A stretch of 64,000 nucleotides of DNA, taken from the NCBI GenBank assembly GCA_977016875.1, contig CDRNST010000060.1:620001-684000 (forward strand), written 5' to 3'. Under the pieces are notes generated by a model. It made no database searches. It was not told the DNA's origin and saw nothing but the letters and a program-made list of their open reading frames with translations. Below, piece by piece: positions 12,701 to 62,541 of the stretch (positions within the stretch are counted from its first letter, which is position 1; the number at the start of each line of letters is the position of its first letter). The stretch is from Pavona decussata. Its lineage: Eukaryota. The position numbers and the translations under genes are program-made.

Positions 12701-15700
12701 TCCAAGTACACCAAATACGTACATCCGTGACAAGTAACACATTTGCATTTCTTTGTGCGGTTATTGTAACCTTCACGACTAGGTAATGGTTGTTTAATTC
12801 GACATTACATGAACAAGACAGGTTATTTTTTGCTATCGCAGCGCAGTAACTAAATAAAGCCTTACCAAGCGATATTCATGCCGCAAGGCTAGTGCAGGAC
12901 TCTTGCAGCCACGAACAAGTGGTAGAAAGTGTTTCGTGAGTACTTCCCTCCATATTGACTCTTTAACCCGGGCATTGTTCATTGTTTGGCGTTGTTTATT
13001 CTCAAGAAACGCTTCAAAACTGAGCCAAGCCACGACAATAAAACAGCGCCAATCCACTACCCCACCGTGCCAAGCCTCGGGGGGTGTTATTAAAGGTTCA
13101 TTATATACAGTAACCGGGAACAGTATAACAAGATCTAATGAATCTTGCGGTTTGCTGCACCGCTGTCTAGCTCCCCTGTAGGCAATTCTTGAGAAACATG
13201 CCCTTTCTCTTTTGCAAACACATTGCAGAGCTATGACTTGTGTTTTGAGATCATACATAAGAGATCAGAGCAAATTTCTCTAAATATTACAGACTTTACG
13301 CTACAGTGTAATCAGTGTGTATTCTTTGAAACCTTCACTGCTCATGAAATAAATTGATAGCCTGCGAATAAAGTCGACTATGATTTCCTTGCATTTGGAG
13401 AGGATCGAAACGCCGAAACGGTAATGATCGACAGCGGCCTTATTCGCAAGCTACTTTCTAATTTAGCAAAAAACAAAGAGAATTATCGCTTACCCGAGCG
13501 ACAACCGTTCCACGGTAATCGACACAGATATAGTAGCTACCATCGTATGATTTCAATATAACTTGCCCTGGAGAGCCTACTGATTCCAGCTTGATCTTAA
13601 CTGCAAAACAAAGGATAATATCGTTACAAGTGGGCATAGCGAATCCGTGTGCAATCACGCGTCCAACAACTTACCGTCACGCTCCGATGTCTAGAACTTC
13701 GAGGAAACTGAAAGGTCAAGGAACTTAGTGAAGGGAAGGAAAGAAAAGGAAAGGAGTGTCATCTAGTTTTAGGGGCACTTGTTTCTGATCTGTCTGAATA
13801 ATGTAACTTTGGCTTTACATTGCGCTGGTATATATATATATACATGGTGACTTGTCATGATGCTCACGCCAGGAGCACGCAAAACGACATACAGGAGTAT
13901 ACTATATCAATCAAGACTTTTCCCACAAGTACTTTAGAACAACTTGAAGTTTGCTCCACTTAAAGGTCTGCAGTTTAATATATTCCTGGGATTTGAGCGC
14001 TGATAGATCACAGCCAACCCTCAAATCCACGTCGGCAATGTCACGGCTATCGTGAACTTTCAAATCGCCGCGGAATTTACACGGATAGTTTGAAGTCACC
14101 GCTAAACATCTGCCGCACAAAGTAGGTCTCCCTGTGTAAACTAGCCTTGTAGCTACAAGGCAGGACAAAGCCACCGATGTAAATAAAGTCGACAACATGA
14201 GCGAACCTCGCGTTGTCCCTCAACGTGGATTAAAGTGCGAAAACAGCTGATCACTCACCGTTTGGATCATGTTTGTCTCCAGATCCATCAACTTTGCCGT
14301 TTTTCACACGCACAAACTTGGCACTGTTCTTTGAGTACAATCTCTTGTACCTCTGAATAGTAACAATGTGATTATGTACTACATGGCTTGGGTTTATTCC
14401 ACTGTTTTCCAATGCCTGGGTGTCCTATATAAAACACAAAGACGTTTAGTATAATTATCTCTGGCAGACCTACCAAGTAGCTAGTCAAACGCGCGGTCTT
14501 GCTTCGCTTTGAGCTGTGGTTTCGGTAAACCTGGGGGTAATTTGCGTAGGATATACAAGTTTGTTTTCTTGTCGTTTAGCAATTGCCGCCCTCGAAAAAC
14601 ACTGAGGCCTAATGTCAACACTCCGTGGGCTACGCGCGCCACGCGCGCAGCGGTAACTGAACAAATTAAGCGTGGGTGTTAGGCGGACGCGCGAGCCTCA
14701 ATTAACACAGGCAAGCCTGACAGTTGAGTCGTGATTTGCCAAGAAAAACAAGTGTTTTCCCAAATATCGAGAGAGTCAGTTGATACGTACGTTCAACCCG
14801 GATACAAGCGCCATTGTTTTTCGAGATGATTATTGACCTAGGAAATTAATCCAGTTCAGGCATAACCGGTGAATTCCTCGCGAACAAATTGTCAATTGAC
14901 TTAAGTGGCACGATTGATATTTTCTTAGAGTGGTTCATAAGCGCGTCCAAGATCAAATGCGATAAAAATCACAAATTCATCCTAAATAAAATACGGAGAA
15001 AAAAAATTGCCTCATACGAAAGTTTCGCTCGCCAGCATTCACTTGAGTGGTCATTCCGTGGGATTTCATGCACAGACGCAAAAGTTGAACCACTTTAAGC
15101 GCCTCGAATTGCGGTTGTCAGAGTGATAAGGTTAAGAGAGTAACATAATTTAGCATAATATACATTTGTGCGATATTGCTTGAGTGACGTAAATTCTTCG
15201 AGCAAAATGGACTTGAATGACACTATGCTCGGGTTTTAACAAATGGAATTAAAAAACAAAAAAGTTCCGACAACAGTTTCGAACTAAAAAAAGACGTTCT
15301 ATAAACGTGTGAAATTCAACGCTTGAACAACTAAGGTTAAAATAAGAGCTGGCAAACGAGACCTCGCTTTGAGATGCACCATTGTTTAGTTTTAAAGAAC
15401 CTTTACAATATATAACCGAACGTGAACAACTTTGAAATGAAGAACACAAAAACGTACATTGTCACTTACCCCAGAAAAGTTTAATGGCTTTCTCGTGGGA
15501 GAAGCAAGACATCTGCGGATTAGAAGCGGAACATGATTAAAATTGCTGGAAGTTTGAATTGTGGAGACTTCAGTTTGACTTGGAGTCTCGATGAGGAAAA
15601 TTTCAATTCTGCATGCAAGGCAAAAAATTATAATAACAACAATAATAAGTACTCACGTTGAAAGGTACAGAACATAAATAATCGGCCATATTTGAGTCGC

Positions 15701-30986: not shown

Positions 30987-33900
30987 GGGTGATCATATCC
31001 TTAATTCTCATGGCCTCAGGCGTTGAATAAGCATGTATATTACAAGGAGAAATTTGATGTTGATCACTGTGGACAACAAAGCGTTAACGTTTGAAAATGA
31101 AAGGTCTTCGTGATACTTAAGGTTTTCTGGTTAAAGTTTTTAAAACTCGTGTAGTTTTTATATTCGTTTTCGTGTGAACAGACAAGATGATCTGTAAACC
31201 GTCGTGTGGACGCAGAACTTTAACAAAAAAGCAAACCCAGTTTCTGAAATAAAATTTTCTGAAAACGTTTTTCAAATGAAAGCTCGGGAATACTACTTTC
31301 CTGTAGTAATTTTTACGTTGAAGTTTAAACACAAAGGAAAGCTATTGAGCGTCGTCTCCTGGTGCTTGGTAAAGGGGCAGTGTCATCTATTTTAGCGTCA
31401 CCTTGAAATACCCACAAAAATATATTTGTATCGATGGAAATGTTGAAATAATGGTCAAGTTTTGTTAACAATAACCCTACTAGTGCACAGAAACTGCGAT
31501 TAATTATCTTCGGCTGCATATGGCTAGGATGGAAATGGATTGTAACATGAAAAAATTGGGAAGTTCGTATAGTGTTCAAGTGGGAAGAAAATCGCTAAAA
31601 CGGACCATGGTTCTATATTCCTTGGACAAATCACTTAACTCTTTCTTCCCGGTGCTCTAACAACGATTTTATGACCTTTCATGGTAGAGAAAAAGTACTT
31701 TGTCAAATTTTGACGAAATTAGAGCAAACTGAATATCTGTGACAGTAACCCCTTAAAACAGTTGAAAAAAATCTAAAAGAACTTTGAGCGGCGTTGCCCA
31801 CGAACGTACTAAGGATTAACAATATTGTTTGCTTTGTAATACAAACTAAGAACGTCATACAAAATGATTTATTCAGACAGTATTGGACTGTGTAGCAAAG
31901 TTAATTCACCGCTCCAGTTGAATCGGTATTTATATTCGAAAGACTAAATTAGAATCGACAGGAAATTGCTAAAATAGAAAGGTAATATGGATTCGGCTCA
32001 GAGACATCACCGAAAAAGAAAGGCACAGTTTTTCTAAAAAAGACCGAGGAGTCTGCGGAATATTTAAAGTGGATTGGTTTTAATGCGGTTCGCGGTATTC
32101 GCGCAAAGCGGACGCGTTTGTAACTGACTCTAAAGTCAACTGAGCAGACGACATTGTTTGTTTTTCTATTCTGAGTTAATTTGTTAGTAGAGAAAAAGCC
32201 ACTAATTATGCTCAAGCTTGTTGTACTTAGCGGCAAACAAAGTTTATCGACCTACCTTTGTTTCGTTCTTTTGTCGCACAATACTGCGCCGAGTTTTCCG
32301 CCGGAATTGGCCAAGATGTTCTTTTGTGGTTTTTACCGAAACTTTTCCGTCTTGTAAGGTGAGAAGATTACACAATTCCGCCACTAATTTCTGTGGGAAA
32401 AAGGAGAAAAGAAACGTGACAAACTCGACGGTTTTTTTTTTTTATTTAAAAGAGGTATTTTTGTCTGAGTGTTAATGGCCTTATGTGAAGCGGTGGACAA
32501 CAAAGCGAACTTCGACTTGTTTAGCTTAACAGTCGACCACGTGTCTTGAACTAGGCTTTGTTGTCTACCTTTATGATCTGAAGGCTAAAATGCGTTAACA
32601 ACGCAACACAAAAATGCAGCAAAGGGGGTCAGGACTCAAAAGAACGGAAAGAATTTCCCTTTACACAATTTGACATTTGCTTCAAAATTTTCGTCAGAAT
32701 TTTAATCATTTTAGGCAAGCCCACATGGAAATATTGATTCTTCTTTCTGATTGGTGGAATTTTCGAGACGAAATCATCATATGACGATACAGTTATTGTT
32801 CATAATTATCACTAGCCTCTTCACCTACGTTCCTGATGTACTAGCTATACTATGTTTGGTCGTGTTGATATTGTCATGACATGTAAAATGTTGATAATTC
32901 TACTCCTACTTTGGATAAAGAGAGTTAGGTTTAAATACCAAAATAGGCAAAACCGGAATCAATGAACTCTGATCGCAAACAAAAAAGAGAGTTTCTACAG
33001 TAACGATAAATTTGTCGACGTCTACCTAATTGGGATATTACAGCTAATCATGGGAAAAACGTTTAGCAAACCCACTGGAAATCTGAAATATAGCACGTGT
33101 ATTCTAAAAGTAACCGAAGTAACGTAATCTGCTAGTTTTCTTTACTCAATAAAATATTTCATTTTCTCCATGAATCCCGCACACGATTCCTTAAGCGCCT
33201 TTCAGTTCTGAGGTCAGTGTTGAGTTGTTCTCGCATTAGAGTAAGATTGACAAAGGAAAGAAGGGGCTAAATTTATTACGCTGTTCTAAGGCTTGTCTGT
33301 CGGCTAAGTGTCTACAAACGGTATTGTTTAGCAGCTTGTATTGTGAATAACCCGATACATGGTCCTGGAGTAACAATGATGTCTGAACCATTGTAATAAT
33401 GACGGTCTGAATTGCATAAGCAAAAACTCATTCGTCAGCCATCGGTCACAAAACTCCTTCTTACAAATTACACTCCTTTATAAGAACGTCTAATTTGGAG
33501 GTTGAGGTTGAACATTATTTTTTATTTATTTATTTATTTTACAGTTTTTAAGCGTTTTGAAGTTAAGTTATCTGTCATGTTGTTTCTATAAATCAATTCG
33601 TACTTGACCAGGAACCTTCAAAAAGCCTTATTTGCCGTAACGTGGTACGTGTATCAAGTTGCTTGCGAGGCCTTATTTAGTGTTGTGTACAAGAGAACGT
33701 GCCAACTAACTCTCAACAAATTTGGCTTTACGAAAAGTGTTCAACACAGAGGGGTGTTTGTAACGTGACAAAAAAAAATTGATACTGCTCGTTTAATGGT
33801 CAAATAAGACATTCTTCACTGACTCTCCCTGTACTTAGTATGTTCGACTTCTTGAAATTTTGGTTTGTCTCCCTCTCAATGTTGTTGTAAATAGGTCCTT

Positions 33901-34837: not shown

Positions 34838-37800
34838 ATGACACGGCTGTTTCAGATTATATTTATATGCCTTGTGACTTGCAAAGTTGGGAGCACACTA
34901 GATCTAGAGAGGCTAAATCAAGGTTTGTACATATTTTCTTTCCCGTTTTTTCCCACAGCGCATCACGCCCACAGTTTTTTGAAAGAGTGGATTACTTACA
35001 AAGTGATGATAACTTTATCCAGCGGATAAATGGCTATCCAGAGGATCAAATGTATTACTCAGGTCCCGGTTGTTTAAAGAGCGGATAACTTTGATGGATA
35101 AGTCGCTATCCAGTGGATAAAATGTACCCCTGTGAATGGATTTTATCCCGGCTGGAGAGCAATTTATCCAATAGATAAAGGTATCCGCTCTTTGAGCAAC
35201 TGGATCCAGGAGTACATAATTTTATCTACTGGAAAGCGATTTATCCCCTGAATAACTGACGTAATCCACTCTTTGAACAACCGGGGCAGCTGCTGTGGAA
35301 ACTAAGACCCTGTTCTTTGACCACTTTGGTTGATGTTTCCCAACAGAATACTAGTTTGAAGCCGATTTGTGGCTGAAATAATGTGTGTTATTGGTTCGAT
35401 CCTGATTGCCACGGCTGTTCACAACTGAACAACCCGCAAATGATTTTTCCCAATAGAAGATGAAAACTCAACCAACCACAAACAGAACACAATTTAAGTG
35501 CCACTATGTTTCGCAAGGTCTGAACGAAGTATCAAACCGTTTCCGTTTATCAGTGCATGTGTAGTATGCGTTAATCGAATCAGGTTTTTGTGTTCTTTTG
35601 GGAGTAAACTCTTTCGTTTGGTTCAAGTTGAACAGCATCGAACCTAGCCTGGTTCAGTGAATCTGCTGAATGTTATTTTCCGACGAATGAAAAAAGGGTT
35701 TGAAAAGTGCTTTTACTATTCACGGGACATGAGGTTGAAGGCGTTGACTATCACGCAGGAATTCATAATGAGGGGGATAGGGGAGGAAAAGTCAGAGGAA
35801 AAGCCTAACACTCAGGGCCCGGTTGTTCGAGAGCCGATTAACGTTAATCCACGATTAAAAGTTAACCGAGGTTTTCTGCTCCTTCGTCAAAATTTTAAGC
35901 TAGTGGTAAAGAAAAGTCAACGTCAAAACTGAGGGACAAAAATCTCTTTGAAAAATCTTTTATTGTTGTGTAATTAAACTCGAACCAAAGTTGTCGTTAA
36001 TACAGGATTAGCTTAATCGGGCTTTGAACAACTGGGCCCTGGGCCGGTTTGTTCGAAAGCCGATTAACGCTAATCCACGATTAAAAGTTTATCGAGGCTT
36101 TCATCGTCGCTCGTTAAAATGGGTTTAAAGGCTACTTTCAAACTAAAAATAAAGAAAAGTCTTGGTCAAAACTGAGGGCCGAAAATCTTTTGGAAGAATC
36201 TTTGTTGATTAGCAATTATACTCGAGTCAAAATTTGCCTTAATCCAGGATTAGCTTAATCGGGCTTTGAACAATTGGGCCCATGTTTAACTAATCGTCAC
36301 TTTTTCAGCCGGTTTGTCACTACTGCATGACTATCAAATCCGCCATCTTAGTTTGAACTTTACCTGTCGTAAATCTAAACGCATTTTTCAAAGATTTATC
36401 ATTATTATGTTATCATTTGGAAACGTGTCTACTGGTGAACTCTTCATACTGTGTTTGTCAGCAAAACGGATAACAATTAATTCATTCATTCTTCGGGTAC
36501 AACAGAGATAGAATTCACCGAGTCCTCGATTTCCTGTTGAGTGTCCCTTGCAATAGTATCCATGTAGTTAGCGTGCCTTCTTCCCCTGTTTGGATATAGC
36601 AGTCTCCAACAGACAACGTTTGAGAAGACTTTGTCCGTGGCACGAAAACAACGGCCGGCAAAGCGTACTCTACGTTGTGCAACAATGATGGCCATATAGA
36701 AAGAATGTCTCATAGATCTGTGCCTTAGTTCGATGGTTCCACCAGGAGATGCTCTGTACTCTCATAAGAAGAGGTCTGGTGTAGGTAGCATCCACCCGAT
36801 TTTGTACCTCTTTTTTTCATGGTCCACTTTCTGCACCATAAAAAAGGATGCTTTCCACACAAGCCCTGAAGTAAGCCAATTTAGTGGACTTTGAGATGCA
36901 AGATTGCCAGATATAATGCAGCTTGTTACAGGCATTCCATACTTGTCCCTTGCGTGATATGAAGTCCTTCTTGCTCTCTGTAGCAAACGAGCCGAACTAC
37001 TTAAAATCAATGACCACCTTGAGCTAATTGGGCTACCGTCTTCGGAGCAGATAGGTTGATGTTGTCATCCATGTACTCAGTCTTCTTTGAATTGAGAAAG
37101 AGGCCAACCCTGGCAGCAGCATCCTTTAAAGATAGTCGTAATCATACCCTATGGGGTCCCCCCTATAAAGGGTCGCACACTTGACTCTAATACGATGCTA
37201 CTCTTGACAGTAAGGGTCCAAAAGAATCGCTTCGCCCTAATCAGCATTTGCTAAAATAACGTACTGATTGCACTTCTTCTGTATCCAGGTAGCCGATTGC
37301 CGACACTGCCCGACAGCGCCATTGGCCTGTGGCTCCAACAGCAAAAAATGGTGAAGAGGGTATGTCACAGGTATACCACGGAAAAAGTACACACAGGTAA
37401 GTACTGCGAGTGATAAACAAAAGGATGTGGGCTATGATAACAAGTTAATACGTAAGATGTGTAAGTGTTGCAAGAAAACTGTGGTGCGAGACTAGACTGT
37501 CTTAGACAAAACTGATTGTAAGACTGGCGCTGTGGCAAAAGGCAATGCTACTTAGGCCAATGTTTCTACCAGTACAACTCCTGCAGGCAGAAGCACCAGT
37601 GCAGTTTATTTGTGCATTGTGATCCTCTGCATTCAAACGTTTTGAGCCTGTCAGTAGCAAAACGTTATAAGACTCTGAAGTCGTCCCATGTCTCGGACCA
37701 ATTGGAAGAGTAGCAAAACCCCTGAGTGATAATCACAAAATGCTTTTTTTTTTTTTAAGGAACTTAAATTCAGTTTTTAAGCGGTATCAAAGGACTTAAA

Positions 37801-40800
37801 ATGGTTCATGTTAACTGTGTTACTGTTAACTGAAACAGATATTCAAGCTAAGTGAATCAGCTATAGTTTCACATAGTATCACTGTAATGATCTGTTATAT
37901 CAAAGGAAGAAAGCAAGTAAACGTGTAAAAGCAAGGTATAACGTACTATGTGAAAATATGGTTCACCGGCGAGGATTCAAACCCCGGTCTCCTGCATTCA
38001 CTGGGCAGAGGTGATAACAGCTACACAACTAACAAGCGAACCCACAGTAGAAGCGGACGGAATAGCCATACTAACTCTTATTACATCACTGAGATCACGG
38101 CATCGCTCACTCAGCACTGGAAGTCTGATTTCACTTTGGATCGACTTATCACTCGCGTGATTTGTTCTCTCGCGCGGTGATCATGCGTTACGCTTCGTGA
38201 TTGTAGCACGCGCAAACTGTGAACCGTTAGATAAGCGTCTGCTTATTTGTCACTTTTTAAACCGACGAAGGCCGAAGATTTTCGGCCGAAACGTCTTGCT
38301 AATTTTTTTTTTTATAAACGTTTGGTTTTTAACGTTTCTAGAAGTCAGAGTCATACACCTTTTAGATTACATTATGTCCATTCCGGACTGCAATTTCAGT
38401 ATCTTTAACAGAAACCTGAATATGAATACTGTTAATTCACGGGTTAGATCATAGATGAGGACGTTTTCTACGGTTTTGCCGTGTCGTAATTGCTAACGTT
38501 CCTTAACAAAGTTCAGACAGAAATAAACTACAACGCAAATTGCCTTTGTCTTAAATTTGTTCACGCTACGAACTGGCATTGAAACGAAGGTTGTCTTCGC
38601 GGAGCTCACGCGCGCGTCACCCTCATGAATATTCACACGCGAGTCACCCTCGTGACATCCGCGTTCCACGTTTGGGAGGAAATATACCGAGTTGGCTGTG
38701 CGCATGGAACATTTAAAGGTAAATTTTAATCGCGAGAAAATCTATTAACGCGGTAGTTACTGTATACGGTGTTCGACACGAGTTTGGTTAGAAATACGAC
38801 GATAGCTTCCTTTGTCACAGTTACAAAATGATTGTCAACAGAAACAGTATTCTTTTTCACCTTGACCGTTTTACGCGAACCGAATACGTTAATCTATATT
38901 GACAAAAAAAAGAAAAACACTTCATTGATCCCAGCGGAACAAAAAGCTTCTTATCAAGTGTTTTGATTCGTAAGGACGAAGCTTAGAAGTTATTTTCATG
39001 TTCAAAGTGTTTGAATGATATTGTCAGAGTTTTATCTCACTTGAAATAAAGGATAAACACTCATAATCTCCCGTCCCCTCTTAGAACTGATGTCTCACTC
39101 TTTCGGGTGCCAATTCGAGATTTTATGACCTAGAAATTGGTGTTAATTTTCGTTAAATTCTTACTCTAAGATTACGAAGGTTCTGTTACCCACTCTGGTA
39201 CAAGAAATACCGTAAGTCATAATCGGAAAAAGTCAAAATTTATATGAATTTTATGAAAAACAAACAGTACCACAGGAAGTTCACTAAGTTTCCATAACTT
39301 TCAATTGAATACCTACACTTTAGAAACTCCTTGCACAACACAATTAACTTCACCACAGACAGTGAAAGCACTACTCAAGAAAACTTTCACATGATTAATA
39401 GCCACGCACTCGGAAGCTAAGACCATATTGTAGAGTATAATAGACAGCACGACACGTGAAGTCGGTAAATACATTTAACGGTCACACTTGTGGTTTTTAA
39501 CCACCACAACTTTCTACAACAAAATAAACACCACCACAGGAAAGTATAAACGCCCAACAATTGGCAACAATTCAGGATTTTATCCACAGAATCAAAAGTA
39601 GAACCACGTCACAGAGCATGATAAACAATACAAAACGAAAGGATACCTATAGCTTTCCTTTGAATGAAAACCTTTTCTTTTTTGGCTTTTTTCCAGACTC
39701 AAAAGTTAGAAACATCTTACACAGCATATATCACCTTATAAAGCGCAACCAAAACAGTAAGAAAGAGCAGACAAACAGACTCAAAAGTTCGAACCACCGT
39801 AGCATAATAAACAGCATCAAAACGGGAAAAGTTGTTTTAAGGATCTTTTCCACATACTCAGACGAAACTTCAACAACGCGTTAAATGGCTTGAGGTTTGT
39901 CTCTGGAAGGAAATGGTGGAGAATCACGAGATCGCATGACGTTCTTTGCGGGAAAAGAAGCCCCTGACTTGATCTGACAAACAGGCTCTAATATCAACCA
40001 TATTTGCGTATATTGAGATCAAGGACGCGAAAATCATAACAGGAATACGGAAGGAGCTTAACGAGAGGATAATAAGGCAATACTGCAAATCCACAAGGGT
40101 TTCTGCACACCAAAAACGAAATAGTGCGTGATGCAACTGGAATAAAAGTTAAGTAGACACTAGAAGCATTGGCTTTCTTAAGTGTTTTCAAAATTCTTGA
40201 AGGTTGTTGATCCACGTGGAAACCGCAGAAAAGTAAGAGAGATTAGATTAGGTTGGGGGGAGGGGGAAGGGAGCGAGACCCCACGCACGCTTTCGCGCGA
40301 TCTCCTCGTGTTTTCGACCGATCCTTCTCGCGCTTCGCGCTCGATTTGTCACCCAGTATTTCCACTTTCAGCGCCTTTCTCACAGAATTGAATAGAATAG
40401 AATATTCTTTATTTAAACATGGTAAAATCCATTAGGAGTATAAAAATTAAAAATAATCTAACTATCCTAAAGAAAATTCAAAACCTAACTACAACTAATC
40501 TAACTAAAACCTCTTCTTCGTGAATGCCGTGTATACTCTAACATTAAAAATGAACAGTGACTAATCTTTTAAATTGACTTAGAGATTTAGCTTCTCTCAC
40601 ATCACAGGGCAGGCTGTTCCAGAGAACTGCTCCGTGTTGTCCGTGTTAGTATACCATTTTCCTTAGAGATTATCCAAGTTATTTCAAGTGTGTGCATTTT
40701 TTCAACAGTTCTCAAGATTTTAAATTTACTAGAATGAGACACTTATTGCATTCACAGGAACTGGACGAAAAATTCATTTGGCAGACTGTATAACACGTCT

Positions 40801-52240: not shown

Positions 52241-53217
52241 GGATAAAACAAATACAAAATCTTTCTTCAATGCACTTCACATAGAAAATCATTACCAGCA
52301 CTTTGCTGGTGAAATGCAACCAATTTTCAAGTTTTCTGCGAATAGAATAAATAACAGAAATATTTCTGCACAGCCCCCTATATTAATTGTACAGCACCTC
52401 TTACACAAACAGCTAGAGAGCATGAATTGAGCTTGAATTGGAGAATGTGTTTAAGAAATATGCACACATTATATTTACTTGGTCATAAGTTACATTAATG
52501 TATACAGGCTGTGCAGAAATCTTGCCTAAATAACTAATCTACTCCAAGCATATGAACTTGTTTTTGTTTTAATACACTGAAATAAGCTCACTGCTCTTTG
52601 TGTAAATAAAGACCAAGTTCGCGCCCTGCAGTACTATACAGCAACAAAGAATAAGAGTATCTCGTTGAGTCAGTGTATAAAACAAGACAGTTATAAGACA
52701 TGCATGTAAGCCTATATGTTTGAGAAACCAATGATCGTTCGTTTCACCTGCGTAAATAACGTTTTATCTGAATGTAAATCGACTAGCTCAGCCTTTAATT
52801 TAGAACTGAGTCAATGTTTACATGTACTAGCCATAAAGTAAGCTTACTTGTGAGAAGATTGAAGCTTGTCTGAGATTTAGCGGACAAACGAGATATGTAA
52901 AGTAACTGAAAGTAAGCTAACGTGATATTGTACGTGTAATAATAAAAACTTACCTGAAAATCAAGCCACTTTCTTTTTCTGCCCGTCCGCCGTAGTCTGG
53001 ATTGCAAGATGGCGGTATGTTCTCAAATAATGTGCCAGGCGCACATTTTTCCCGCGCTTTTTGGAGGATCAGATGACGGCTGCGCGCGGGCTGTGGCGAG
53101 CGTAAGACAAATAAAACAAGTTTGTCTGGTCGCCAGGCATTCTACATTAAATTTTAAGAAGTCTGTGATAGACAATTTTGTTCTTTCTTAACATATTATT
53201 AGGCGCTGCACAGTATT

Positions 53218-53330
53218 TAAGTGGTTTGCAACCAATCCCTGCAGATCCAAAAAGGATGACAAAATCCAACATGGCTGCCACACCATTCCCTTTTGGATCT
53301 CTAGCTAGGGATTGATTGCAAACCACCTAT
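53218..53330. mobile_element. Small foldback element
   Basis: gtggtttgcaaccaatccct ... agggattgattgcaaaccac inverted ends. Confidence 0.6.
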
Positions 53331-54634
53331 TGATTTTAGTGAAACCACCCACTGGCCATCTTTAAATTCGGAGTGAGAAATACTGACATGCAAGACCAGG
53401 TCAATACAGTTATTTTCAAGTGCTTTTATTTAGAAGTGTGACTAAAATAGTATTTAGTGTTCCAGTGCAAGTGTACAAATTAGCAATCTTCTTGATCAAG
53501 GAACTTTCCAATGCGATTCCAAACAGCACTCTTCAGAGTTGATAGCTTGCGCAACAGTCGTTCCATTTCCGACGGGCGCAGGAGGTTCAATGCTTGGAAC
53601 GCCAAACCCAATTTTTTGTTTGTTTGTTGTTGTTGTTTTTGCTCCCTCTCTCCTGAAGCTTTCGTTCGTTTCTCGCACTCGCTTGGTAAGGAAACGGCTC
53701 AATCTCGTACCCAGATCTCCCACGGTGAGGCGGAAGAGAGATCTCACATTTTTACATTTCCAAACCTGCAGTGAGATCTGCGTACGAGATTGGAATCGAC
53801 TGTTACGCAGGCTACAGAGTTGAAGCAACTTCACCCTCATTTACTCAGCGGCTAAACAACTGAGTTTGATCTATAAACAAGGATGTATGAAGATACTTGC
53901 TTAGCTAAAAGCTGAAGTCGCTTACTAGAATGGAAGTTCCAAGAGAATCAACCGCGTTAAAGGTGAATACTATGGTCGCTTACCATTCATCATGTCTGGC
54001 ATATGGCACCCAGGCTTAAAACAGGCATGCTCTACAAGAAATAGGTAAACAGGAAAGATCTTGTTGGGGGTGGGGATCGGATAACTTTTCCTCCCGGTCA
54101 TGCGTTTGTCAAGTGCTCAGTATTGAGACACCAAATTGAGAATGAGTTGTCCTGAGGTTGGGCTGCCTGTGGTCCGGCGTTCGGATTAAGTGTTGCCGTC
54201 GTGGCTTCAAATACATACCCGTGTGTTTCCAGACCTTCACTACCAAGTTGCTAGCTTATCAGAACACCTAACCCACCCCAGTATAACGGGCTACGAGCCT
54301 CCGGCTAAGTCAACCCTATCCCTAGTTGATTTAGTTTTAAAACTGTTTTTCCCGCGGTGAAAAGGTATGACGTGTGGCAATTTGATTGTCATTGCTCTTC
54401 TCTGATTGGTTATTTGGACTGGCGGCGTTTCAGAGGTCCCCTGAGAGCCGTTCTAAGAAAAAATCTTCCCAGAAAAGGGTTGACTGCAAGGCTTAGTACG
54501 AGGGATAGAGTCTTCTAGTCATGGGCTCCCCGCACCAATGTTTTCTTATACTAACTAACCAGTCTAAACACAAATTGTAATCTACTATTTAGCCTATGAT
54601 AAGTTAACAACTGTGAACTGAATAAAATGTTAGG

Positions 54635-54921
54635 ACGGTTTTCAATTGAGTGTCGAAAGTAATTACCGGTTTGCTTTGGTTTTGCATTACAACGTTCTGT
54701 GATTGGTTAAGGCAAAACTCGCGCCACTTTCTCAACCAATAAGATGTTAAACCAAAACCAATCGTGCCTCGTTCGCACGCGTTTTCCCGCGCTTGACGCC
54801 GGTTACATGGATTTCAGTGCTTTGAATTCTGATTGGTTCATTGCGCTGTTTGCGTCTGTTGTGATTGGCCAGAGTAATTACTTTGGTTACGGTTTTACGA
54901 CACTCGATTGAAAACCGCTCT
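54635..54921. mobile_element. MITE, same family as 44733-44990
   Basis: cggttttcaattgagtgtcg ... cgacactcgattgaaaaccgctcta. Confidence 0.75.
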
Positions 54922-55084
54922 AATTAATCTGATAAATAGAAAAGAAGAGAAAAGAGTTGCTAAAGTGGCCGTCGTATTAAAATGAGAGTAAAGATTAATC
55001 TCCTCGGTGCGGACCGCCAGACGTAATAAATGGTAATTTGGTGCTTCACTTTGTGAGAATTTTTGATTATGTGTAACTATATAA

Positions 55085-58000
55085 TCAGTAACATTTGCAG
55101 TGTTTTACGACGTCAATAGACTTCGGAGCACCAGCAGCGGCAAAAAGCACTCGTGCCTCAAAGGACCTGGGACGACACTTTCCACCAGTCTCCCCCGACT
55201 GTGACGACAGCATGCACACTTTGGGAGGGAGCGTAGAGCCTGGGCGCCATAGAGGATTAACCACCCTTTAAAAATAAGCAATTTATGAATTAGGCATAGT
55301 CGGAAAGGGCCATTTCCAAAAGAAATCAAACAAAATAACAACAATAAGGACAATGGACATACATCAGTGTTGTGGGAAGTACGGGGCGCGTCTCAACCGC
55401 GGTTAAGCGGAAATGAAGGAATTTTTATTGCCTCAGGCAATAAAAATTCCTTCATTTCCGCCGCTCTGTCTTCGCTTCGCGCATACGCTCTATTTCCCTC
55501 TTCCCTCCTCTTTTCTAGCACCTGTCACGTGAGTCACACTGGATGTTGATTTTAATTATTCACGCTTATCTATTTTTCCTTACCTGTGAAGGCAATGTCC
55601 TTTGTTCGCTTTGGAACATTCTCCAACACAGCGTCCAATGTCAACAACCTATGGATACAAAAAAAAATTTTCTTTTTCCCTCAGTGTTGAATTGTAATTT
55701 ATTAGTTGTCGTTTTGCTAGGATTTATTGAGAAAGGACAATAACAAATCCTCAAACATAATTTCCTATCCAATAATCAACAGTGCTATTCACCAAAGAAT
55801 CAAAACTAATCCGATTTTTTTAATCAATCAGGAACAAAATAAAAACTTATCATGATTTGCTCTGCGCGTCAGGCCTGCGTTTGGTACCCGCTGTCCTTCG
55901 TCTGGTTCTGATTGGTTCATTTGATCTGATTACAATTTTTTAGATGGCGCAATTTATATGCAACGCTATTTAACTTTCTAAAAGTACTTCTTTCCTAGCT
56001 TAAATAATTAAGCTGAAAGACAGTTCGAAAGATTCGTTTGCAGGGATCGGAATAAATCATCATGTTTACAGGTCTAAAGGGGAAAGGAAAGGTTTTAAAA
56101 GTTGAACTCACCTCTTGTAGCGTTACATTTCTTTTTGCCTTTTCATCAAATATGGTGGTAGTAAAGACCTGGCGGAAGGATGCTCGATAACAGCTTCGAG
56201 CACAGCCGCATTTTAAGATCTTTTTCACGCAGTTAGCTCCTACGAAATCACAGGAAGAATAAGTTGAAAATTTACTAAAACCTATTAACGACGGTACCTA
56301 CTAATACCGAAGTATTTTTGCGCGGTTTGGCGCGGGTGACCATGCGGGAAAAGCAGATCTTAGCAAGGGCTGTTGAAATCCAAAAAGAAATTTGGGGGTC
56401 ACCACGCATGTTTTAGAGATAATTAAGCAACAATTGTTCTAAAAAGCAGTAAAATACAAAGCAATGTATGATGTTTTTCTTTCAAAATTGAAGCTTTATT
56501 ATCTCTGAAAAATGCATGGTTACCTTCAATTTCCTTTTTGGATACCAAAAGCACTTGCTAAGTTCTGCCTTCTTCGCATAGTTTTAAACCGCAACTGTAA
56601 CTTACAACGCAATGCTCTGGTCAGCATTGTGTTGCACGTTTTAGAGAAAAAGTACCTTGTGTAAAAGCGCCTTCAGCTTTCGTAGTGTAGATACATCTAC
56701 TAATCTAATGACTAGTAAATCGCGTGTTTTAGAAAGACGCGTTATTGTCACAGCGCCTCTCTCCATCCAGGCGTGCATCGCTTGGGCTCAAGACAACTCT
56801 TAATTGATTGTATGAAGCTCTACTCTCACAAATAACGTCGCGGACAGATGTTTGCGAGCCTGGCAAGTGGGAGTTATTCCTTCTAATACCTTCCCTGGCA
56901 GACAGGGGTGATCTCTGCTAGCCGCAGTATGAGAAGTCAGACGTTCTGCCATTATATCACTTACCATTTGGACCTCTAACATTTACAACTTTCGTGTCAA
57001 TGGCCTGGCATGTTTTCTTTCCTAAAAAAATAAAGATATTGCATCAGCAAGTTAAGGAGTTAATAACCAGGGAGACTGCTCAACCAAACCTCGAAAAAAT
57101 TTCAACTAGAAAGCGACAGCCGGAAACACGTCTGCGTTCGCAGGTTAGGTAGACTGATGATCGAGTGATAACGGTGGAGAAAAGGAAAGCAGCGAGAATA
57201 AAAGAAATACATATTGTTGCCCAATATTTTGGTTTGAAATACAAACTTCAGGGCTACCGTACCACTTGTGTTTAAACCAAATTCTCACACTTAGATTATC
57301 ACACGTCACTCAAAACTGGATTTCGCTACCTATTTACTGATCAGCAGTAAAAGCCACTACGACAATTATGTGGAGTCTGGGAGCATTCACGGAGTGCTAT
57401 GATTTCTGGGATCGTTTGGCAAAGAGGAACAAACCTCGGAAACCACCCTCTCGATGTACGTTTCTTTGGGTTGACTTCCGGTAATCTAGGTCCTGGAACG
57501 TTTGTCTTTTTCAAAACTACGTTCATTTCACAACTGATCATGATTTCCGACACCATTTGTAGAAGTCCTACGTTTGCCTAAACGACCTCATAATCACTCA
57601 CCCGTGGATCTGAATTCAAGCCTAGGGTGCCATTCTGGAGTGGAGCGAATCTTGGAACATGAGTTTTTGATTTATTTGAAATTCGAAAGTTGTATCCCTA
57701 TTTTCAGCGAGATTTTTAAGGGACAACTTGTCATTACGCATACATATGAAGTTTTACAACAGATTTGTTGCTTGCTCCATGTTGGAAATTCTTTAAGACA
57801 TACTGATAGTGCTGTACGTATGCCTGTCGTACTTCTTACCCTTGTTGCACGAGCCAACACAACGACCGACATCAACTGCTTTTTCGTATCTGGATCCCCA
57901 GTGGAATACCCGGATATTGGTCTCCCTGTGACAGAAGCGGCGCGGGTCGAGACAGCGACAGCCTAGAGCGCTAATGACCTCCATCTGTCCGTCTAACGAA

Positions 58001-60014
58001 ACCAATTTCTCGACTGAACTTTCATGAGCCACGCACATATGTGGGAAATTGCAAGGCTACGCAGATGGAATACAAATAATACGCTATCTACTTGTCTCTA
58101 TCAGTCCCTTTATCTCATTTGTTTTGCACGTTAAAGGAAGGTGGGTAACTCGAAAACCGCAAGGTTCATTTATCCCCCTCACTCGCCTTTCAGTTTACAC
58201 ACATCTCGCCCCCTATATTGTAGTTTGCAGTAGCTATTGTGTATTAAGTGTCAAGAGAGTATATTTTAATGAGTCTAATAAAATCCACTTGTTGTTACAA
58301 AACAGGCGGATCATAATTTTCTGCTGGCAAGCCAGTGGAGTCGTCGTGGTAAACAAGTGGCCTCCGAATTTTAATTTTTAACAAAATTTGTCAGAATTTA
58401 AGAAATGTTCACCTCATGTGCCTGACTTTCCCTAGGGCTGCACCTGACTCAAACCTAACCTTTAAAACACAATTAACCAAGACCAGTATATATGGATTTT
58501 CCTTGCACGAACCGAGAACCAGTTTATTTTACTTTAATACTTCGTTTGCCTCTGAAGGCAGAGGAAAACGAGGCGAACTCGCAAACTCAAAAAGGTCAAA
58601 CGAGGGGCGATAATTCGAGTGACAACTAAATACGGTAGACAGTAGTTACCAGACCGCGCCGTTCGGAATCTGCTGATACTGGAACAGATCTGATACGACA
58701 GGTGTTGATGTTTCTCTCAACAGACTGCAAGTCCACTCCTAAAGAAAAGATATTGGGAGAATAATAAGTTTATTTTTATGATGAAGGGCTATAAAAGAAG
58801 TCAAGAAAACAAGTTATACGGTTCTTTCATTTATTGTGTTAACGACAGCACTAATTCAGAAGATTCTCGGCGGAGAATTTACGACCAATTTACGAAGATT
58901 GTCCGAATACCGTCCGAACGTTTTCATTCATTTGACGACATTCGAGGAAGATCCGAAGTTTTCTTCAACGAGCCTTATGTTCATTACTTGCATGCTTTTG
59001 GTGTAGATTCTAGTTCAATAACTAAAATGGGGATTTCCAGGTTTGACTGTGCAAGAGATGGTTTTCTTGCTAAAACTGAATGGTGATTAAAATTTGGTAG
59101 ACGATTTCGCAAAATCTAAACCATTCCATCGATTCCTCAAAATCGGCGAAGATTAGTTCTTGCAAAGTACAGGCCTGTCGACATTTTTGATAAACAAGAG
59201 ATAATATTTTTTCAGTGCGCAAAATTCAGCGAGATTAAGGTCACCTGTTAGCTGTGGTAGTTCCTTATTATCTTTGAAATAGGGCATGCCTTGAAAAATA
59301 CAGTGTTGTAATCGTTCTCTCCTGGTATCCATTCGAATTTCGTTTTTGTTCTTTTAGATAAGAACCTATTCAAATATGTGAAATTAAAAGTTATTTAGAA
59401 ATTACCTTGTCCGTAACGTCGTTCCTCACTCATTAGCTCACAAATGCTTGTTCTCTTCTTGGAGTGAGAGTCGCCATTACTAAACTGCCAGCTGAAGGAA
59501 TCTTAAGAAGACAGCAATGAAAAAACAAAATGACATTAAAAGATGAAATTAAACATAGGCTTTTTGCAAACTTATCAGCTATGTTTTAATCTTTTTCTGC
59601 GTAGTGTATATTTTATTTTCAGCCGTTTAAACCTTCAACTATTTGTCATGAGGAAAATCAGTTACAATCAAACCACGATTTGATTGTGATTTGCCGCTTT
59701 CGACATTCCTCATAAAAATCAGCGTTCTCCTCTTTAATAACAGGCTCTAAGCCTAACTGAAATATGCTAACGTCAAAGTTAATCGTCGGTACTACAACAG
59801 GTCTTATACAGATTTTTTTTTATAATCAGAAAATATGAAATAATAATGAAAAATTTAAGATAGACAAACCTTTTTCTTTTGGGCTTTTTGCCTGTGATGC
59901 CTCAGTTGGACCGTTCCTGTCAATCTTTGAACGACCCTCTACAAGGATAACTAGCATCACAAATATCAGAAACGAGAACGGAATAATCGTTTTATGATTC
60001 GGATGTGTCATCAT
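55085..60014 (-). CDS. Secreted triple cystine-knot protein, Pinhead-like paralogue B, 8 exons, 325 aa
   Basis: Exons 60014-59870, 59501-59406, 58738-58650, 58056-57840, 57021-56965, 56239-56112, 55648-55584, 55265-55085 (978 nt, GT-AG, phases 1,1,0,1,1,0,2, identical to A). Signal peptide ...IIPFSFLIFVMLVILVEG. Motifs GCRC, DVGRCVGSC, GPNGANC, KCGC, DIGRCVGEC, CRP, HCKCY*. Confidence 0.85.
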
Positions 60015-60590: not shown

Positions 60591-62541
60591 ACAAGATGCC
60601 TGCTATACTGGCATTACGCGAGATGCCGTGGCTGATTCATTTATTCCAACTGTGTGCTTCGCCGATTTACAAAACCATCCTTGCTAATGGAATAGTTTGA
60701 GTCACGAAGATCGCGTTACGTTGTTTCCCTTGTGTTACGCTACTCAGGGTTTCAAGGGAAATTGCGGGAATTCCATTGCGATAACGTAAGCTTCTCAATG
60801 ACCTCTTTTCTGTCTGCAATTGTGGTCTAAGACTGTCAAAGGAAGCACGATTCCTTCGCTAGGAACTCTCCAATTTCCACCGTTTTAGATGTCGAGTGCT
60901 TCTTAGAAGTTCTTCTTTCGATTTACCGCTTCAAAATCGTGAAATTTCCGTTTGAAAACGGCACACTTGAGTCCAGAACATGTTTACAATATGGCGCCAC
61001 AATTTAATCAAGCTTTAATGGATAAATCAAATGATGCGTTGACGTCACACAGGTAGGGGTGAGTGGGTCCCCTCCCTCGCGATAGAAGCGACAAGAATGG
61101 ATTTTGATTGGCCTGCTGTTGTTGAAGACAATCAGAACAATGCATCCCGAGTAGGAGAGGGGAGAGTTTAATGAATAAACAAGATGCCTGCTATACTGGC
61201 ATTACGCGTGATGCTGGGGCTGATTCATTTATTCCAACTGTATGCTTCGCCGATTGATAAAACTATCCTTGCTAATGGAATAGTTTGAGTCACGACGATC
61301 GCGTTACGTTGTTTCCCTTGTGTTACACGACTCAGACTATCAGCGGAAATGTGTGAAATTCCATTACGATAACGTAAGCTTCTCAATGACCTCTTTTCAG
61401 TCTCGCGTCGTGGTCTAAGACTGTCAAACGAAGCACGATTTCTTCGCCAGGAACTCACCAATTTCCACCGTTTTAAATGTCGGGTGCTTCTTAGAAGTTA
61501 TTCTTTCGATTTACCGCTTCAAAATGGTGGAATTTCCGTTTGAAAACGGCACACTTGAGTCCAGAACATGTTAACAATATGGCGCCACAATTTAATGTCT
61601 TTAATAAATATATCAAATGATGCGTTGACGTCACACAGGTAGGGGTGAGTGGGTCCCCTCCCTCGCGATATAAGCGACAAGAATGGATTTTGATTGGCCT
61701 GCTGTTGTTGAAGACAATCAGAACAATACATCTCGAGTAGGAGAGGGGAGAGTTTAATGAATAAATTAATGTACCGATTTGTGACCACGAGGAAGAAAAA
61801 AAAACAAGATGCCTGCTATACTGGCATTACGCGTGATGCTGGGGCTGATTCATTTATTCCAACTGTATGTTTCGCAGATTTATAAAACAATCCTTGCTAA
61901 TGGAATAGTTTGAGTCACGAAGATCGCGTTACGTTGTTTCCCTTGCGTTATGCTTCTCAGGATTTCAAGGGAAATTGCGGGAATTCCATTGCGATAACGT
62001 AAGCTGCTCAATGACCTCTTTTCTGTCTGCAATCGTGGTCTAAGACTGTCAAAGAGAGCACGATTCCTTCGCCATGAACTCTCCAATTTCCACCGTTTTA
62101 GATGTCGAGTGCTTCTTAGAAGTTATTCTTTCGATTTACCGCTTCGAAATGGTGAAATTTCCGTTTGAAAACGGCACACTTGAGTCCACAACATGTTAAC
62201 AATACGGCGCCAAAAATTTAATCTGTTTTTTAATAAATATATCAAATGATGCGTTGACGTCACACAGGTAGGGGTGAGTGGGTCCCCTCCCTCGCGATAT
62301 AAGCGACAAGAATGGATTTTGATTGGCCTGCTGTTGTTGAAGACAATCAGAACAATACATCCCGAGTAGGAGAGGGGAGGGTTTAATGAATAAATTAATA
62401 TACAGATTTGTGGCTACGAGGAAAAAGAAATCGTCCCGTTTTTAGACACGGTATGCCCCCTCAGGGCATCCCGCGTAAAAAAAAAAGAAATCGACCCGTT
62501 TTTAGACACGGTATGCCCCCTCAGGGCATCCCGCGTAAAAA
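60591..62541. mobile_element. Three tandem ~590-625-bp copies of a non-autonomous Helentron-like element, with a duplicated 60-bp terminus
   Basis: Units start acaagatgcctgctatactggcat at 60591, 61179, 61804 (terminal hairpin followed by subterminal IR ttacgcg.gatgc); the far end atgccccctcagggcatcccgcgtaaaaa occurs twice (62424-62541). Confidence 0.75.

Follow-up and report, generated by a model that had tools for sequence, protein, structure and literature searches.

What would two genes of the Pinhead family be doing on either side of a gene for TGF-beta itself? The question is raised by a 64,000-nucleotide stretch of the coral Pavona decussata (GCA_977016875.1, contig CDRNST010000060.1, positions 620,001 to 684,000 of the forward strand), here called the window, whose own numbering is used throughout unless a contig or locus is named. 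In the window, the Pinhead-like genes A (34838-45693, + strand) and B (60014-55085, - strand) both point toward a TGF-beta gene (47743-50883, + strand), giving the order A -> TGF-beta -> <- B. We regard the identities of the three genes, the homology of A and B to Pinhead and the conservation of the cassette as near certain. Beyond this, we propose that the locus is a three-gene hexacoral cassette in which the products of A and B bind, outside the cell, the TGF-beta encoded between them and probably antagonise it, a reading that we consider somewhat probable.

The tandem pair of Pinhead and Admp is said to have been described for Ciona, zebrafish, Xenopus and amphioxus, in work of Imai et al. 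2012, Yan et al. 2019 and Itoh et al. 2021. Pinhead is treated in the literature as an ADMP-specific regulator (PMC6989304, PMC8188501), its gene being the direct upstream neighbour of admp 'from arthropods to vertebrates' (PMC6989304). In Xenopus, Pinhead acts as an inhibitor of Admp, to which it binds, undergoes no furin processing and is structurally unlike BMPs (PMC8188501); the zebrafish protein is described as a secreted ligand that resembles BMPs and has a ventralising effect (PMC6989304). Two further activities, a repression that acts in cis between the Ciona genes Pinhead and Admp and an action of Xenopus Pinhead with the FGF pathway, are taken here as reported by papers cited in PMC8188501 and PMC6989304. 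A 2024 review on BMP signalling in Cnidaria and Bilateria refers to Pinhead only as a chordate-centred ADMP regulator, and Pinhead in a cnidarian or beside TGF-beta was not found in the literature full text, a coverage that leaves out the supplement of Imai et al. 2012. The tandem architecture of Pinhead plus ligand is already known; new here are its occurrence in a non-bilaterian, its duplication around the ligand and a ligand that belongs to the superfamily's other branch.

Gene models and homology

Gene models were built by aligning orthologues from databases to the DNA and choosing frame-keeping GT..AG sites exon by exon, in an assembly of 602 Mb and a window without N runs. The window was searched per exon, and full-length orthologues served as proxies for A and B in protein searches and in the fold and complex work: P0145 (Oculina A), P0135 (Oculina B), P0138 (Desmophyllum, A-type) and P0003. 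Gene A extends from the ATG at 34838 to the end of the stop codon at 45693 and comprises 8 exons with a coding sequence of 891 nt (296 aa), a protein length equal to that of the Oculina and Pocillopora orthologues. The TGF-beta gene (ATG 47743, stop end 50883) has 2 coding exons and encodes 397 aa, and gene B (ATG 60014, stop 55087-55085) has 8 exons encoding 325 aa. With 2049 nt between the A stop and the ligand ATG and 4201 nt between the ligand stop and the B stop, the initial annotation, which had described two 8-exon paralogues pointing at a TGF-beta gene from 2.05 kb and 4.2 kb, proved correct in coordinates, exon counts, orientations and distances. All introns of A and B are GT..AG, both coding sequences are divisible by 3, the intron phases of A (1,1,0,1,1,0,2) recur in B, and the two exons 4 share 36% identity with all cysteines aligned; by these features of sequence and gene structure, A and B are paralogues. 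When the DNA is compared with the loci of Oculina and Pocillopora, similarity lies almost wholly within the called exons, with their order kept, and since conservation is limited to exons, A, the ligand gene and B look like real, constrained genes.

The ligand carries both TGFb_propeptide (PF00688) and TGF_beta (PF00019) past the Pfam cut-offs, with RRNRR ahead of a mature domain of nine cysteines. Compared with all PDB sequences, it matched the TGFB3, TGFB1 and TGFB2 proproteins best (~170 bits), and against mature-domain chains TGFB1-3 reached ~135 bits as opposed to <=72 for activins and BMPs. Its named homologues in a large protein collection were all TGF-beta-1, at 35-44% identity and mostly spanning the whole last exon. 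In a maximum-likelihood (ML) tree of mature domains, the window ligand falls with the vertebrate TGFB1 clade at a support of 100/100, together with the Oculina and Actinia ligands that adjoin Pinhead-like genes; 14 further TGF-beta-family genes from this genome fall outside the clade, as do the Pinhead-adjoining ligands of Styela and Tubulanus. Pfam, PDB matches, named homologues and ligand phylogeny thus all bear out the earlier description of the ligand as a true TGF-beta, and we classify it from its sequence as TGF-beta sensu stricto (s.s.).

The propeptide invites comparison with the vertebrate latency machinery (LAP propeptide, LTBP/GARP), which keeps TGF-beta s.s. inactive outside the cell. 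Ligand exon 1 is 29% identical to residues 35-112 of fish TGFB1 and has cysteines after the signal peptide, so that propeptide and cysteines near the signal peptide are retained; the flanking proteins, in contrast, are unrelated to that machinery, and no RGD motif was visible in the coral propeptide when its translation was inspected. To our knowledge, vertebrate TGFB2 is likewise without RGD.

Some other members of the superfamily in this genome may be mentioned here. No ADMP orthologue could be singled out in the ligand tree, in whose BMP-like part the branching lacks resolution, and locus L008 (contig C274) is no more than a candidate. The highest-scoring TGF_beta match of this genome (128 bits) was obtained on the contig of the window, at contig positions 783755-784057 (- strand), ~100 kb past the window, and its mature domain looks BMP2/4-like. 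Contigs C270 (>=10 copies, i.e. at least ten, within 218-555 kb) and C183 hold an array of divergent TGF-beta-like genes on one strand, with open reading frames (ORFs) mostly of ~200 aa (one of 241), which looks like a lineage-specific expansion.

For A and B, a profile of the two exon-4 peptides was compared with 1.84 billion representative proteins and gave 111 matches, of which 23 reached E<=1e-10. Many of the matched proteins are ~280-340 aa long and contain two or three matches to the profile; their sources are sponges (Oscarella, Sycon, Corticium), corals, anemones, amphioxus, tunicates, arthropods and a nemertean. With 17 full-length members combined into a profile, matches extended to frog proteins and to the teleost protein P0152 (3e-56), whose cluster holds proteins named 'pnhd'/'im:7138239' (NCBI) and 'Pinhead' (UniRef); a word-indexed protein search with the cnidarian and sponge alignment returned 3 proteins only, adding one further anemone. 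As a non-circular test, a hidden Markov model (HMM) of 24 named bilaterian Pinheads only, teleost pnhd included, was run on 2937 six-frame pieces of the window, and its sole significant matches were exons of A and B, in model order; exon 8 of gene A was not significant with this model (E=0.39, outside model order). Coral orthologues matched it at 1e-47 to 1e-48. Pfam contains no Pinhead model and gave no match for P0145, P0135, P0031, P0152, even for teleost pnhd, or for the A and B exons of the window, and membership was therefore established with profiles built for this analysis.

Gene structure points the same way. Amphioxus Pinhead has 8 exons with phases 1,1,0,1,1,0,2, the same as A, B and both Oculina genes, and when annotated proteins of other species were placed on their own locus DNA, five of the seven introns of coral A/B (2, 4, 5, 6 and 7) coincided with those of amphioxus Pinhead exactly or to within one alignment column. 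Sequence profile, internal repeats and gene structure agree, and we accordingly identify A and B as true members of the Pinhead family; the family profile reaching the pnhd cluster, the collinear matches of the bilaterian-only model and the amphioxus exon-intron correspondence together uphold the homology to Pinhead that had been suspected.

Both proteins (A 296 aa, B 325 aa) start with a hydrophobic stretch, taken as a signal sequence by inspection, and contain 21 cysteines each beyond this signal-like N-terminus, an odd number that leaves one unpaired. This cysteine might form an intermolecular disulfide. The initial annotation had called them three-knot proteins, which stands as far as repeated knot motifs in exons 4, 6-7 and 8 are concerned and has to be qualified for the N-terminal module: in bilaterian Pinheads this module contains four cysteines (CC...C...C), of which A and B retain two, so that this knot is degenerate.

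As a side observation within the family, the bird protein P0147 (XP_071433937.1, Pithys albifrons, 314 aa) falls within the vertebrate Pinhead clade (support 100, quick tree); according to the literature, birds and mammals have no known pinhead sequence.

Conservation of the locus in hexacorals

The trio was present in all four further hexacoral genomes that were compared, two of stony corals and two of sea anemones, which speaks for the microsynteny expected from the initial annotation. In Oculina patagonica, an A-type gene (296 aa, +) is followed by the ligand (384 aa, +) and a convergent B-type gene (329 aa, -), and Pocillopora damicornis has the same trio, its minus-strand gene of 258 aa matching B. 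In Actinia tenebrosa, an A-type gene (316 aa) and the ligand (392 aa) are followed in convergent orientation by a 250-aa gene on the same contig, which is P0016 and of B-type; in Actinostola sp., A-type gene and ligand are followed by unannotated B-type exons on the minus strand (7e-39). The mature domains of the four ligands are 65-83% identical to that of the window over 110-111 residues.

In the whole 602-Mb genome there are three Pinhead-like loci, two of which flank one TGF-beta-family gene within 25 kb, and 34 Pfam TGF_beta matches. With only three such loci, two of them around one of the 34 matches, and the trio recurring in four other genomes, the arrangement is not a matter of chance. 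In the family tree, which is a quick version of the search, A and B group together (SH-aLRT 99), and each of the two subclades contains coral as well as anemone sequences, which places the duplication before the split between stony corals and sea anemones. The third family member of this genome, gene C (locus L023, C334:3653133-3656584, + strand), is divergent and was recognised by its exon-4 equivalent (E=1.7e-16 with the family profile).

A different view of the locus would be that the adjacency arose by chance or as an assembly artefact, or that A and B are decaying pseudogenes. It could draw on the minimal RNA support described below and on introns and intergenic DNA rich in transcribed repeats, but the frames are intact, the splice sites canonical and the conservation exon-restricted, the trio occurs in four independently assembled genomes, and contigs of related corals look like spliced transcripts. 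We consider this view hardly credible as a whole, and chance adjacency and pseudogenes in particular are effectively refuted by the intact frames, the exon-limited conservation and the four further genomes.

The conserved block may extend beyond the three genes. An FGF gene with two exons (13494-13616 and 14254-14364, - strand; Pfam FGF E=2e-3 and 1e-4) lies ~20 kb upstream of A on the opposite strand, and a gene of this kind occupies the corresponding place at the loci of Pocillopora (L029) and Actinostola (L028). From this gene order, the block may be described as FGF / Pinhead-like / TGF-beta / Pinhead-like. The sole non-exonic conserved block, window positions 32285-32396 against Oculina L001:8470-8580 (74% over 113 bp), is located 2.5 kb upstream of the A ATG and could be a 5' untranslated exon or a regulatory element.

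Fold and predicted complex with TGF-beta

Structural predictions were made with the Oculina A orthologue P0145, which is 66-83% identical to the window A exons over the aligned stretches. Its AlphaFold2 model, based on a 59-sequence alignment, shows long beta-hairpins at a predicted local distance difference test (pLDDT) score of 88 and a predicted TM-score (pTM) of 0.76. In an exhaustive VIA structural search, the top 35 rows were all cystine-knot proteins; the Z values are middling and short of the level of an unambiguous fold match, the list being uniform. Residues 204-296 matched Gremlin-1 (Z 7.2), NBL1 (Z 7.1, root-mean-square deviation 2.0 A over 58 residues), thyrostimulin, Norrin (6.3-6.5), artemin, PDGF-B and sclerostin (5.8), and residues 128-202, the middle module, matched TGF-beta2 and activin monomers (Z 5.5-6.2). 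A Foldseek comparison of the whole model with the PDB gave no match at E<=0.001. The model suggests that the protein consists of tandem cystine-knot modules that are most like DAN-family BMP antagonists.

DAN members bind TGF-beta-family dimers directly. The best matches of the C-terminal module are in this family (Gremlin-1, NBL1/DAN, sclerostin) and Norrin, which like the Pinhead-like proteins are secreted cystine-knot proteins, whereas DAN proteins have one knot module per chain and Pinhead-like chains several. The likeness is one of fold (Z ~7), as Pfam returned neither DAN nor any other family at E<=1 for Pinhead-like proteins, save a meaningless match at 0.47.

That A and B are themselves signalling ligands, or covalent partners of the TGF-beta chain, instead of antagonists would fit the description of zebrafish Pinhead as a secreted BMP-like ligand (PMC6989304), the alignment of the middle module with TGF-beta2 and activin monomers and the odd cysteine left over for an intermolecular bond. 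However, there is no dibasic processing motif ahead of the terminal knot domain in the A and B exon translations, Xenopus Pinhead is not cleaved by furin, differs in structure from BMPs and inhibits Admp (PMC8188501), and the best structural matches are antagonists. We consider a role of A and B as ligands or covalent partners unlikely.

The proposed binding was addressed by a complex prediction of two copies of the Oculina mature TGF-beta domain with P0145 residues 25-296. The interface score (ipSAE) was 0.61 as against 0.01 for the best control, three runs shared >=80% (at least this share) of contacts, and the pLDDT of the partner was >=76, i.e. no less than 76. For calibration, the ipSAE mark is attained by 51 of 78 solved complexes and by 2 of 108 mismatched pairs. 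The predicted contacts involve residues 245-266 of P0145, a loop at the exon 7/8 boundary, and on the ligand the helix 47-63 of one monomer together with the fingers 27-29, 89 and 98-101 of the other, which by our reading of the contacts would correspond to the 'wrist', the type I receptor site. The AlphaFold-type check that the initial annotation had named was hence passed for the Oculina A protein and a TGF-beta dimer, and it supports, at the level of a model, binding of the A-type protein to the dimer.

We propose a model in which the A and B proteins would bind the TGF-beta s.s. encoded by their neighbour outside the cell, by analogy to Pinhead and ADMP in chordates. In doing so, they would probably cover the wrist of the mature dimer, as the predicted contacts suggest, and with the wrist covered Smad2/3-type signalling would be dampened or shaped. 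The head-to-tail spacing of 2 kb could in addition couple transcription of A and of the ligand in cis, in analogy to what has been reported for Pinhead and Admp in Ciona.

Relation to the Pinhead-Admp pair

Among bilaterians, a ligand gene with TGFb_propeptide and TGF_beta lies downstream of Pinhead, in the same orientation, at a distance of 8 kb in Branchiostoma, 2.8 kb in Styela and 3 kb in Tubulanus; at the Glandiceps locus there are no called neighbour genes. The mature domains of the Styela and Tubulanus ligands are 63% identical, the first exons are 45-55% identical across Styela, Tubulanus and Branchiostoma, and the Pinhead-adjoining ligands of the three animals are each other's closest relatives, BMP-like and not TGF-beta s.s. 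They are taken to be ADMP on the basis of the literature (PMC6989304), the tree containing no named reference. The gene downstream of A is TGF-beta s.s., whereas Pinhead of Styela, Tubulanus and amphioxus has the BMP-like ligand as its neighbour. The Tubulanus locus also has, just upstream of Pinhead (277 aa), a gene of 278 aa that gave no Pfam match (L006:6869-7902, + strand) and may be a tandem Pinhead paralogue.

The coral cassette and the Pinhead-Admp pair are alike in that both involve the same family with 8 exons and the same phases, in that Pinhead lies 1-8 kb upstream of a superfamily ligand on the same strand, and in that the product is a secreted multi-cystine-knot protein, for which binding to the neighbouring ligand is here supported by a model. 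They differ in the ligand, which in the coral is TGF-beta s.s. (Smad2/3 class) and in the known pair ADMP (BMP class); in the number of genes, two convergent flanking paralogues versus one upstream gene; in the N-terminal knot, where the coral proteins are two of four cysteines short; and in the host, a cnidarian as opposed to the published range 'arthropods to vertebrates' (PMC6989304). The comparison suggests that a layout with Pinhead immediately upstream of a superfamily ligand is common to hexacorals and Bilateria and that the partner differs, TGF-beta s.s. in the former and ADMP in the latter.

It is conceivable that the trio has been kept together for cis-regulation only, through shared or interleaved enhancers or transcriptional interference, with proteins that do not touch, A and B acting instead on BMP-class ligands, e.g. 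ADMP-related ones, or via an FGF-receptor route such as has been proposed for Xenopus Pinhead. This would agree with the joint conservation of the cassette and the opposite-strand FGF gene in the window, Pocillopora and Actinostola, which a regulatory block would lead one to expect, with the cis repression in Ciona and the FGF-pathway action in Xenopus, as far as these are known from the papers cited in PMC8188501 and PMC6989304, and with the change of ligand partner between cnidarians and bilaterians. On the other hand, the complex test was passed with a wide margin over controls, the nearest folds are ligand-binding antagonists, and chordate Pinhead does bind the ligand encoded next door (PMC8188501). 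Taking both sides into account, we regard a purely cis-regulatory role as improbable, albeit one that deserves serious consideration.

Returning to A and B as binding partners of TGF-beta, it should be noted that several observations weigh against this proposal. TGF-beta s.s. is normally kept latent by its own propeptide, and the need for an extra antagonist is not obvious. The degenerate N-terminal knot departs from the bilaterian proteins. A complex test can be passed because the predictor recalls solved cystine-knot complexes of antagonists with ligands, such a pass is silent on which family member binds, and a three-chain job departs from the calibration given above. Paralogue C has no TGF-beta domain in its flank of a few kb and, genome-wide, no TGF_beta match within 450 kb, and the type C gene of Stylophora (LOC111328534, P0243, L026) has no linked ligand within a 10-kb flank. 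The Pinhead-like loci of the sponges Sycon (L024) and Corticium (L025) have no TGF-beta domain within 10 kb. With flanks this short, the negatives on the locus DNA are weak in all four cases. In the ligand tree, the Pinhead-adjoining ligands of cnidarians and bilaterians are not orthologous, and since the neighbouring ligands are non-orthologous, the layout in common could be convergent or due to translocation. Finally, no contig on TGF-beta exon 1 was found in four runs, and neither a junction nor read-through was seen in 42700-48200.

A more far-reaching version would hold that a cis-coupled module of Pinhead and ligand, with a secreted multi-knot antagonist encoded directly upstream of the superfamily ligand that it binds, existed in the cnidarian-bilaterian ancestor, that the partner was later exchanged (TGF-beta s.s. 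in Hexacorallia, ADMP in Bilateria), and that the hexacoral proteins are dedicated antagonists of TGF-beta s.s. blocking the type I site. We put this forward tentatively, as a possibility that we rather doubt; if true, it would define a type of TGF-beta regulator of which no vertebrate example is known. Irrespective of this, the Pinhead family is older than its stated range, as sponges have members and this coral has three genes, and its conserved genomic partner in hexacorals is TGF-beta s.s., a ligand of the other (Smad2/3) branch. Cnidarian TGF-beta signalling has been implicated in immunity and symbiosis, and the cassette offers a concrete hypothesis for the control of TGF-beta in these animals. 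It also represents a natural experiment on whether gene adjacency tracks protein partnership when the partner changes, and the Pinhead-Admp pair may be one case of a wider antagonist-beside-ligand architecture.

Exon structure

Gene A (+ strand) begins with exon 1 (34838..34922), which carries the ATG and a hydrophobic signal-like N-terminus, aligns to the N-terminus of P0145 and ends in a GT donor of phase 1. Exon 2 (37289..37396) shows 83% identity to P0138 and P0145, is bounded by AG/GTAAGT sites (phase 1) and is conserved in its DNA with Pocillopora L029. The remnant of the first knot, with one cysteine, is located in exon 3 (40758..40843; phase 0), which aligns locally to residues ~75-105 of P0138/P0145, and the core cystine-knot module with 7 cysteines in exon 4 (42742..42964; HMM E=6e-18, 76% identity to Desmophyllum P0138). 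Exon 5 (43950..44012) has an alignment score of 93 to P0138 and an HMM E=3e-4, with DNA conserved in Oculina. The motif CxC...CYR is found in exon 6 (44593..44702; 77-79% identity to coral orthologues, HMM E=1.4e-8) and IDVGRCVGxC in exon 7 (45298..45362; HMM E=1.6e-5, 83% DNA identity with Pocillopora). Exon 8 (45543..45693) has a phase-2 acceptor, contains the stop codon and is 61% identical to P0138; its start matches the predicted ligand-contact loop of the Oculina orthologue (P0145 residues 245-266).

Of the two exons of the TGF-beta gene (+ strand), the first (47743..48121) encodes the signal peptide and the N-terminal propeptide (Pfam TGFb_propeptide 27.2 bits), ends in a GTAAGT donor and shares 77.5% DNA identity with the Oculina ligand gene. 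The second (50069..50883) holds the remaining propeptide, the furin-type site RRNRR, the 9-cysteine mature domain (Pfam TGF_beta 94.6 bits) and the stop.

On the minus strand, exon 1 of gene B (59870..60014) has the ATG, a hydrophobic N-terminus aligning to that of Oculina P0135 and a phase-1 donor. It is followed by exon 2 (59406..59501; 55% identity to P0135, DNA conserved with Oculina), exon 3 (58650..58738; phase 0, aligning to P0135 and P0003) and exon 4 (57840..58056), the core knot module with 7 cysteines, an HMM E=4e-14, 71% identity to P0135 and splice sites read directly. Exon 5 (56965..57021) is 70% identical to P0135 and of phase 1, its HMM match being at E=0.13; exon 6 (56112..56239) and exon 7 (55584..55648) match the HMM at E=2e-6 and E=3e-6, with 57% and 76% identity to P0135, respectively. 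Exon 8 (55085..55265) ends with the stop codon, is 71% identical to P0135 (HMM E=3.5e-4) and has 77% DNA identity with Oculina.

Expression and repeats

For RNA evidence, four runs were compared with window positions 42700-48200, where their contigs fell mostly on multi-copy repeats of introns and intergenic DNA. Run X5, guessed to be RNA, contained one low-depth contig of 245 nt on exon 4 of gene A (42760-42963) that extends 41 nt past the donor, which is consistent with splicing. In related corals, P0003 (322 aa, complete ORF) is encoded on a Logan contig of 1479 nt, and P0115 and P0116 (265 aa) on contigs of 1009 and 1169 nt; as these contigs are too short to contain the introns, the A-/B-type coral sequences are most likely spliced transcripts.

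The introns and the spacer between A and the ligand consist largely of multi-copy elements. At 43250-43620, 44172-44540, 44724-45090, 45644-46010 and 46380-47115, such elements match thousands of contigs of RNA libraries at 93-99% identity, and one element has a copy in intron 6 of gene A (44731-44933) and another just past the 3' end of B (54607-54923). The 1.9-kb intron 3 of gene A contains an ATG-initiated ORF of 211 aa (41336-41971, + strand) without Pfam match, which resembles the C-terminal portion of a retrotransposon protein and would then be an insertion. Three tandem copies of a unit of ~590-630 bp (84-96% identical), starting 0.6 kb upstream of the B ATG, occupy 60591-62430, and a 60-bp unit is present in two repeats at 62422-62541.

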